64,000 bases of DNA from Salpingoeca rosetta (lineage: Eukaryota; Protista; Choanoflagellata). Position numbers and translations under genes: made by a program. The DNA lies in the NCBI GenBank assembly GCA_033442325.1, contig JAWQFM010000007.1, positions 706,719-770,718 of the forward strand, written 5' to 3'. Position 1 is the first letter of the stretch. Each line of letters begins with the position of its first letter. Below the pieces are notes generated by a model. It did no database searches. It was not told the DNA's origin and saw only the letters and a list, made by a program, of their open reading frames with translations. Of the stretch, positions 7,673-11,169 are shown piece after piece.

Positions 7673-9016
7673 TCAGCTGTGACAGGGACGGCACTCCACA
7701 TCAAACACCTGCCCAGTTGTGTGTGTGTGTGTGTGTGTGTGTGTGTGTGTGTGTGTGTGTGTGTGTGTGTGTGTGTATGTGTGTGTGTGTGTGTGAAAGG
7801 GGGTAAAGGAGCAGTAACTGTGAGCGGCAAAACACAAACAACACTACAACATGCCGGAACAACAGCAGAAGCACAGTGCAGCGCAGCACGTACAACATGA
7901 TCGACGCGTGGAGCATATGATTTGACGCATTCAATGTGGCGCACGTGCACCTCCCACGATGACAGCGACGATGGTGCTGCTGCTATCTCTTCTGATGGCG
8001 CTGGTGTGGCCTGTGCTGTTGTCGGCGTCGTTGTTGCTGCTGATGACGACGGCATAGGTGGCAGGGAAGTGGAGACATCACGTGCCTCAAGCAAAGACTG
8101 GTAGTGGGAGCAAGGCACGAGGCAGGAGTGACGTGAGCGATGAATGCATCTGGCTGAAGCACAGCTACGGTTGCACGGCTTCACCACCACAGTCGCCACA
8201 CCTTGATGTCACGTGCAACGTGCGCGGCAAAGAGCTCATGTGCTTGTTTCTGCTCAGTCTCCTTGTCGTACTCGACGTTCTCGTGGATATGCAACCACCC
8301 GCCAGTGTCTTGTCGAAGCACCCGCACAGCCTGTGAACGAACGGCGCGGTGAACACACGCATACAGGGTGGGGTTCACGCGCGTCAGCGCACGCACAGCG
8401 CCCAGGTAGGTGCATGGCATGTGACCAAACACAGGAGGCAAGCGTTGCGCATATGGGAAGAAGGCACCACGTCTTATGGCAGGCCACGGTGATACAGCGT
8501 ACATACCACGGGCCAGCTGGCCTTGCTTGTTGGAATGAGGCCGAGGTTGACGCGATCAGCAATGTTGGCCAGTGGGAACGTGCGGTTGTCTCCCTCGAAC
8601 ACCTCGCACCTGTCGGCAACCTGAAAGTGTGTGTGCGATTGTGCGCGTGCGTGCAATTGTGTGTGTGTGCGTGTGTGTGTGTGTGTGTGTGTGTGTGCGT
8701 GCGTGCGTGCGTGCGTGTGTGTGTGTGTGTGCGTGCGTGCGTGCGTGCGTGCGTGTGTGTGTGTGTGTGTGTGTGTGTGTGTGTGTGTGTGTGTGTGTGT
8801 GTGTGTGTGTGTGTGTGTGTGTGTGTGTTTGTGTGATTGTGAACAGCTCGTTTTGTATGTGTGTGTGTGTGAACAGCACCAACACCGCCACCAACACCAC
8901 CACAAGGTCACTTCCACCCTGCTTCACTCGTGTCCCACAACGCCAACAACCTCCGTCCCGCTGGCAAACCTTGTTGTCTTGTAGGTTTTGTTTCAGCATG
9001 GCCACGGCGTTTGGGT
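7673..9016 (-). CDS. TYW2: C-terminal part of tRNA wybutosine-synthesizing protein 2 (TYW2/TRMT12, Met-10+/Trm5 family); 5' part missing
   Basis: Spliced exons (~9016-8970, 8620-8507, 8330-8202, 8097-7894, 7708-7673) read PNAVAMLKQNLQDNK|VADRCEVFEGDNRTFPLANIADRVNLGLIPTSKASWPV|AVRVLRQDTGGWLHIHENV...|...HIECVKSYAPRVDHV|VFDVECRPCHS*. This matches the TRMT12 motifs NPHAV..L..NL, ADRVxLGLIPSS, GGILHIHQNV and VKSYAPHVDHIVLD. Confidence 0.85.
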
Positions 9017-9083
9017 ACACAACAACAACGACCACAACGACAATGGGCATGACGCAATGTGCGGGTGTATGCAAGGGACTCAC

Positions 9084-11169
9084 CGTCTTGCGGAACTCGA
9101 TGGCGCGGTCGGCAATCTCGCGGAAGCGCTTGAGCTTGCGCTGCAGCTTGTAGCGGCCCATGCCGGGCAGGCGGTTGATGATGGGCAGCTGGTGCGTGAA
9201 GTTGGTGGTCTCGAGCACAATGTATTTGAAAATGTCGACCAGCTCGGCGCGGTCGTCGGCGCTGAGGGAATCGCCAAAGGCGCAGTCCATGATCACGCCC
9301 AGCGTGGCGTCTCCAAGCAGTGGCTGGATGTCAACAACCTCGCCTGGGAAAAGGGGGGGGGGGTACAAGGGAGCGGCGGTCGTGGCATAACAGGGCAGCA
9401 CAAGAGAGGCGTCAGGGGGCGGAGATATGCGCGGGTGTGTCGGCCAAGCAGCGCGACTCAAGGCGCAAACACAACTGCACATGGCACAAGCCCTCACAGA
9501 CACACACATACACAAAAAAAAAACACACACATACACATACACACACACGCAGCGCAACGCAACCAAGCAACCACTGCCAGCACACGTGCGCACCAGTCTT
9601 GGCAAAGGCGGAGAGCTTCTTGACGAGCACGTTGGCACGGTGGGTGAACGCGGGGCGGAATGCAACGAGGTTCTCGCTGCTAAAGGCCTTGTACAGCATG
9701 CGGTGCTGGCTGCGCCAGTCCTCGCCATCCGCCGTCAAGATGCTCTGCACAACAACGGCAACACACGAAAGCACACACACACATGATTGTGGGGCGCGTG
9801 AGCTCCCAAAAGGGGTTTGGGGATGCAGAGGTAGGACAGGCACACACAGCGCGCACACAGCGCACACAGCACACACACAGCGCACACTTGAAGCATAGCG
9901 GAGCTGCAATTGTGAACGTATCGAGACGGCAAGGACGGGTACGGACAGTAAGCAAGCCGCCGGCGTGAAGCCGCTTCACGCCGTAGTTGACGTGCCATTA
10001 GACACGCGTGACACAGCGCTCACCTTGCCGGCCATTTGGTTAACCACCCAGAAGATGGAGAAGTCGCGCGAGAAGGTCAGGTCGTCCATGGCGAGGAACT
10101 GGCGTTTGGGAGTGGTGTGATGCAGTGGCACATGCGTGAGAAGACTGAGCACACGGGTAAATTGGCGCCACGAACAGCAAAGTCGGCACGGTAGGTACGC
10201 ACGCGTATGCTTATCCGCCCCTACAACATACACACACGCACGCACGCGCACACACACCCACGCACACACACGCACGCACAAACGCGCGCACACGTACACA
10301 CACCTTGCGGGCTGTTTCCGGATCGTGGACGCAGACGAGGAGGTGACGCATGGTCCAGTTGATAAAGCCGCCAAACTTGTCGCCCATGGCTGCGCGTCGC
10401 GCGTAGAAGCCGAGGTAATCCTGCGGTGGTGGTGGTGGGATCAATGACGTGTGTCAGCGCAAGGATGGTGGCGACAAGCGGAATCAGTGGTTTGTGAATG
10501 CATGCGCGCGCACATGATGTGCAAACGCTGTTACTGGGGCGAATCACCCCACAAGAACGATCTGATATACATATATACACACACACCCACACGCAACAGA
10601 CGCACACACACGCACACACACAAGCTCACACACACACGCTCGCTCACCCTTGATTGCTCGATGAGATCACCGACAGGTGGGATCCACATCATAAACGGCA
10701 AGCGTTGGTTGAGTCTGGACGGCACATAAAGGCATGTGCAATGCATGTGCGGGAGGGGACAAATCAAGAATCAACGTGAGGTTCGGAGATCAAAAGTGAA
10801 AAGACACGCAAGCAGCTGCAGTAAGGGACAAATTGTCACACACACACACACACATACACACACACACTCGCGCGAACATCATAATCACCACAGCACACCA
10901 CAGCACAGCACATGAGCGCACTTTGTGTTGCGAACTTGGAAGGCCTTGATCCAGAGGTTGGGCCGCGGTGCAATGTAGATGAGGGCGAGCACAATGTAGG
11001 CGAGGAAGGCCACGACAGTGTAGTAGGTGGCGCTCAAGGCGGTGTTCCACACGCCGGACGCGGTCATGCCCATCATCATGCCTCCCAGCAAAGTTTGATC
11101 GGCGGCCATGCCGGCGTCGCAGGCTGCTGCGGAGGCCACGCAAGTGTCGCTGACGTTGTGATCCATCAT
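9084..11169 (-). CDS. Cytochrome P450, N-terminal half only (no I-helix, ExxR or heme-Cys motif visible)
   Basis: Signal-anchor exon (YYTVVAFLAYIVLALIYIAPRP), then WIPPVGDL, VCVHDPETARK, SILTADGEDWRSQHRMLYKAFSSENL (C-helix), VVDIQPLLGDATLGVIMDCAFG (E-helix) and the F/G helices to EFRKT|gtgagt at 9084. No FxxGxRxCxG motif follows; TYW2 sequence follows instead. Confidence 0.82.

Follow-up and report, generated by a model that had tools for sequence, protein, structure and literature searches.

The Salpingoeca rosetta gene model PTSG_03546, in which the first half of a cytochrome P450 runs into the last part of TYW2, is very probably the product of an assembly deletion, with two complete tandem genes in the real genome. 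There, the minus strand of the window (the whole 64-kb stretch of DNA analysed here) would carry the genes of a cytochrome P450 and of TYW2 (tRNA-yW aminocarboxypropyltransferase), both complete. The loss, at the artefactual junction 9016..9017, comprises at least 2.4 kb of transcribed sequence (at least 1.6 kb of the P450 and 0.8 kb of TYW2), plus introns and spacer. A sequence-only reading of the locus had proposed either a real deletion or fusion, or a misassembly. The data support the second proposal and not the first: DNA contigs pass the break as an intact TYW2 exon and as a P450 intron, and two mRNAs are present.

Structure of the locus and of its public gene model

The P450 gene starts at 11169 on the minus strand and has six exons: E1 (11169-10922), E2 (10714-10648), E2b (10420-10304), E3 (10098-10024), E4 (9744-9594) and E5 (9343-9084). 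Exons were queried singly; queries across joined exons were made with the public model, P0001. The translations of E1, E2, E2b and E3 match its residues 1-169 exactly. The Pfam P450 profile PF00067 matched E4 (E=2.3e-5, profile positions 87-133) and E5 (EVVDIQ...AIEFRKT; E=8.7e-6, profile positions 139-228). E5, which is the last P450 exon left in the assembly, is directly followed (...IEFRKT) by a canonical GTGAGT donor at 9083. The next 67 bases (9017-9083, minus strand) are the beginning of the true P450 intron, and they are read through as coding sequence in the public model, where they give 23 protein letters.

On the other side of the junction lies T1 (8970-9016, minus strand), the 3' part of a TYW2 exon that reads (N)PNAVAMLKQNLQDNK, runs up to a GT donor at 8969 and has no 5' part in the assembly. 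It is followed on the same strand by T2 (8620-8507), with a weak TRM5/TYW2 Pfam match in the single-exon scan, T3 (8330-8202), T4 (8097-7893) and T5 (7708-7673), which holds the stop codon.

Upstream of the P450, a divergent plus-strand gene (at 12431-12530) begins about 1.26 kb from the P450 start codon, and its opening 33 residues read as a P-loop resembling that of small Rab-type GTPases. The arrangement suggests that 11170-12430 is a bidirectional promoter region shared by the P450 and the divergent gene.

Sixty-seven bases past the E5 donor, the minus strand of the reference reads ...gttgttgttgtgt|acccaaacgccgtgg... at 9017|9016; the letters over 9016|9017 are ...GTTGTTGTGTACCCAAACGCC..., also written ...GTTGTGTACCCAAACG.... 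No AG acceptor is present in the sequence ahead of T1. This agrees with the sequence-only reading, which had described a P450 running to EFRKT|gtgagt and then, about 67 nt into the intron, a switch to the middle of a TYW2 exon without an acceptor. The breakpoint is fixed to within one base, as independent DNA contigs end their match at exactly 9016. Base 9016 (A) is common to both true sequences, so the overlap is of one base, with no repeat. Since the two flanks share only this base, the junction is not a repeat collapse.

The junction had also been described as lying away from any N-gap or long dinucleotide tract, and this was confirmed. The only N runs in the window are the two scaffold gaps at 30854-30953 and 33345-33444 (100 bases each), more than 20 kb from the junction, and the closest long (CA)n tract begins about 150 bases downstream of it. 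Long (CA)n/(GT)n tracts fill many introns and spacers of this region, for example at 8640-8870, 7730-7800 and 7200-7320 (minus strand). Short-read assembly is likely to be vulnerable at tracts of this kind; the junction studied here is not located at one.

No stop codon interrupts the frame between E5 and T1, the intron bases included; the open stretch is 392 aa long (9734-8559). The end of E5 and the start of T2 are both in phase 0, and both the read-through and a splice from 9084 to 8620 keep the frame, as had been claimed. Because the flanks stay in frame by chance, the annotation pipeline gave one chimeric model, PTSG_03546, which consists of E1-E5, the 67 intron bases read through, and T1-T5. 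In the protein-collection search, for which the query was the portion of the open stretch lying in E5, this 504-aa "hypothetical protein" [Salpingoeca rosetta] matched at 100%. The model is present in NCBI, UniRef and EukProt, and its UniRef name is that of a TYW2 enzyme. This chimeric model was the only 100% match in the protein database, in which no full-length S. rosetta TYW2 or P450 was found. A literature search for the name PTSG_03546 found no paper mentioning it.

Both parts of the model are incomplete. Its Pfam matches are limited to positions 31-228 of 462 of PF00067 and to positions 63-140 of 164 of PF02475 (TRM5/TYW2). Pfam and alignment confirm what had been read from the sequence: the reference lacks the P450 I-helix, ExxR and heme-Cys loop (FxxGxRxCxG), as well as the N-terminal domain (PF25133) and the SAM-binding motif of TYW2. 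Alignment with full-length TYW2 proteins places the start of the TYW2 part exactly inside the conserved ACEWNPxAV motif, with about 260 N-terminal residues missing, including the SAM-binding motif VVDLYAGIGYFTLP.

The P450 half resembles microsomal-type P450s in its N-terminal membrane anchor, its proline-rich hinge (MWIPPVGD) and its helices to about G, and it is 49% identical to the nearest full-length relative, P0123 (529 aa). Unlike the reference, P0123 has AGSETT (I-helix), ETLR (ExxR) and FGTGRRYCLG (heme-Cys loop). Two N-terminal-half P450 predictions in EukProt, P0002 (257 aa) and P0003 (261 aa), are 67-73% identical to the S. rosetta half, and both stop at the same residue (...RKLKRF), 13 residues short of where the E5 donor falls in S. 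rosetta. Over the last ~75 residues the two do not differ at all, although their N-termini do. The probable cause is truncated gene prediction or a collapsed assembly in their own organism. P0005 (419 aa), a TYW2 prediction with the same style of identifier, is full length and separate.

Exons T1-T5 show 39-55% identity with the TYW2/TRMT12 (tRNA(Phe) 4-demethylwyosine aminocarboxypropyltransferase) of relatives and animals, with the common motifs NPxAV, DRVNLGLIP, GGWLHIHENV and VKSYAPRVDHVVFDVECRP. T4 includes a Ser/Thr/Ala/Pro-rich stretch of about 35 residues, which is part of a poorly conserved linker between the GGWLHIHENV and C-terminal WEVHVRHIECVKSYAP blocks; the stretch is longer than in the closest relatives, P0004 and P0005.

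Independent DNA across the junction

This stretch, or part of it, was present in 20 public runs, 17 of which contained at least half of its words. Contigs were aligned to 8880-9800 from two DNA runs of different studies, X13 (2013) and X1 (2018), and from two runs labelled "RNA?", X17 and X18. The evidence from reads consists of assembled contigs, which drop rare variants, and 30 letters of each continuation were read. All cultures go back to one strain, so the runs are independent technically, not biologically.

None of the four runs gave a contig bridging 9016|9017. One X13 contig matches the reference over 8880-9016 and then continues with 210 letters unlike it; a second matches 9016-9489 and continues, on the opposite side, with 81 unlike letters. 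X1 has the same TYW2-side continuation as X13. Translated on the minus strand, this continuation reads ...AAKLYACEW joined to NPNAV, which is an intact exon, and ...AAKLYACEW|NPNAV agrees with the ACEWNP motif of every TYW2 in the alignment. In the DNA contigs, the P450 intron continues past 9017 with a sequence other than that of the reference.

Two other gene structures were considered and rejected on these contigs. One was an intron of the AT-AC or another non-canonical type, with its end at ...gtgtAC|CC; it was ruled out, as the DNA contigs extend the T1 exon directly. For the same reason a nested gene, with the 5' exons of TYW2 upstream of the P450, was ruled out; moreover, the upstream region is occupied by the divergent plus-strand gene.

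Word counts cover a larger set of runs. All 16 DNA-type runs, from several studies, contained 0.96-0.97 of the 132 sampled words of the stretch, and 1.00 was reached in none. Junction-spanning 31-mers make up 30/1191, so about 3.3 of the sampled words are expected to be of this kind, and the shortfall is of 4-5 words. This fits junction words that are lacking from every run; the missing words would be these. The original 2010 genome-project runs (X21-X23) contained next to none of the sampled words.

A non-homologous end-joining deletion could have been real in the DNA or cell stock of the genome project, removing the 3' half of the P450 and the 5' half of TYW2 across a 1-base overlap, with the later cultures intact; we consider this improbable. 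In its favour, a 1-base overlap without a repeat resembles an end-joining event or a chimeric clone more than a collapsed repeat, the missing piece has no other place in the assembly, and a minority allele could escape contigs that drop rare variants. However, X13, X1 (flagged as a possible source), X17 and X18 all lack the junction and have intact continuations, and no DNA run has all the sampled words. The later lines descend from the sequenced strain, so a fixed deletion should persist in these lines, and the loss of TYW2 and of a highly expressed P450 would have to revert. It is very improbable that the reference stock carried a several-kb end-joining deletion giving an in-frame P450-N/TYW2-C, as a spontaneous loss of wybutosine synthesis that was later lost or outcompeted.

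An assembly deletion remains our preferred explanation. Most likely, the assembler used a read or clone that was chimeric or carried an internal deletion, joined across the 1-base overlap. The lost stretch would include the rest of P450 intron 5, all downstream P450 exons (with the I-helix, ExxR and heme loop) and the 3' UTR, then the spacer between the two genes and the TYW2 5' exons, which would encode its N-terminal domain and SAM-binding motif.

Transcripts and the missing halves

X17 and X18 gave spliced contigs, which support their RNA label. The reporting of contig ends was checked at the known splice sites E3/E4, E4/E5 and T1/T2, and it agreed with them. The P450 mRNA was found as contigs of 2091 and 2968 nt in the two probable RNA runs, with the E4-E5 joint 9593->9342. 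At the 9084 donor it departs from the reference into an exon missing from the assembly, with letters unlike those of T2; the frame continues as ...EFRKTGQSAVGDDDD, and in X18 the contig runs for 1624 nt past the E5 donor. X18 also includes a contig of low depth (2) at 9353-9489, inside the E4-E5 intron, consistent with pre-mRNA before splicing or with traces of genomic DNA in that library.

A separate TYW2 mRNA was found as contigs of 1714 and 1800 nt, with T1->T2 spliced and about 800 nt 5' of 9016, the letters being equal to those of the DNA contigs. Thus, unlike the reference, which is without the N-terminal ~260 residues, the reads add at least ...AAKLYACEW and about 800 nt of 5' mRNA. On the basis of this length, the real TYW2 most likely has the SAM-binding motif and the N-terminal domain. 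The junction had been thought to possibly affect wybutosine synthesis; given the two separate mRNAs and the intact TYW2 exon in the reads, no such effect is expected. The sequence-only reading had named separate genes with intervening sequence in reads as the sign of an artefact, and this is in substance what the reads contain.

The chimeric RNA junction, which had been proposed as a thing to look for, was absent from the X17 and X18 contigs. Neither run had a contig on 9017-9082 (the depth was 0 in the bin 9035-9065), and neither joined 9084 to 8620. The two marks of a natural gene fusion, its junction in independent genomic DNA (X13 and X1) and a read-through transcript or a 9084->8620 splice (X17 and X18), were both looked for and not found. 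No chimeric protein or transcript would be made.

These data also bear on a true extra copy with the P450 N-terminal and TYW2 C-terminal parts, which could exist beside the intact genes, for example through segmental duplication or as one of two heterozygous alleles, and be translated as a membrane-anchored fusion. The frame is open across the junction and the public annotation models such a fusion, but neither DNA nor RNA contigs bridge 9016|9017, the intron bases are without RNA contigs as described above, and splicing from the E5 donor leads to another exon and not to 8620. With both forms at comparable depth, contigs would be expected to end where the two diverge, and not to run 81-255 letters on. 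Furthermore, the fusion would be without every catalytic element of both enzymes. We regard this extra copy as extremely improbable.

The missing TYW2 N-terminus and P450 C-terminus were sought in the rest of the assembly, as the sequence-only reading had proposed, and they were not found. Three 30-letter continuations (from the P450 intron, the next P450 exon and the TYW2 exon) had 0 matches in the 55.4-Mb assembly with up to 2 mismatches. The PF02475 profile found no second TYW2 in the assembly, its matches being Trm5 (on C17) and a PRMT-like methyltransferase (on C23). The N-terminal part of TYW2, sought with PF25133 and with the N-terminal half of a relative (P0004:1-262), matched only the Trm5 gene. 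The orthologous C-terminal half of the P450 was not found in the assembly either: the C-terminal half of P0123 gave weak, short paralog motifs. The P450 C-terminal matches on C11, C13, C16 and C35 were rejected as paralogs, with 29-45% identity to that half of P0123 over short motifs and E values of at least 2e-4.

As the missing sequence is nowhere in the assembly, it is absent and not misplaced; a translocation or misplacement of the two halves was thus ruled out. An assembly deletion accounts for both sides of the evidence: the reads restore the expected gene structure, and the sequence they restore is absent from the assembly.

Meaning for the reference genome and proteome

The case is similar to other chimeric models of draft genomes that derive from assembly deletions or misjoins. 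In those, as here, neighbouring same-strand genes become one protein with two unrelated partial Pfam domains, transcripts show two mRNAs, and the assembly lacks the sequence between the genes. Unlike them, PTSG_03546 has its break neither at a gap nor at a repeat and keeps the frame, so it passed annotation. It is an ordinary chimeric gene model from an assembly deletion, not a new gene fusion, and it brings no new biology. It is unusual only in the kept frame and in having no gap or repeat to flag it, and it says nothing on the loss of wybutosine.

Among choanoflagellates, S. rosetta is the main experimental species, and comparative genomic work on animal origins makes wide use of its reference proteome. 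In such comparisons, PTSG_03546 could be miscounted as a fusion of domains, or taken to mean that TYW2 is truncated or that a P450 has been lost. The outcome is a correction of the reference and of its annotation: two intact genes, with at least 2.4 kb of transcribed sequence missing from contig C7 at about 715,734.
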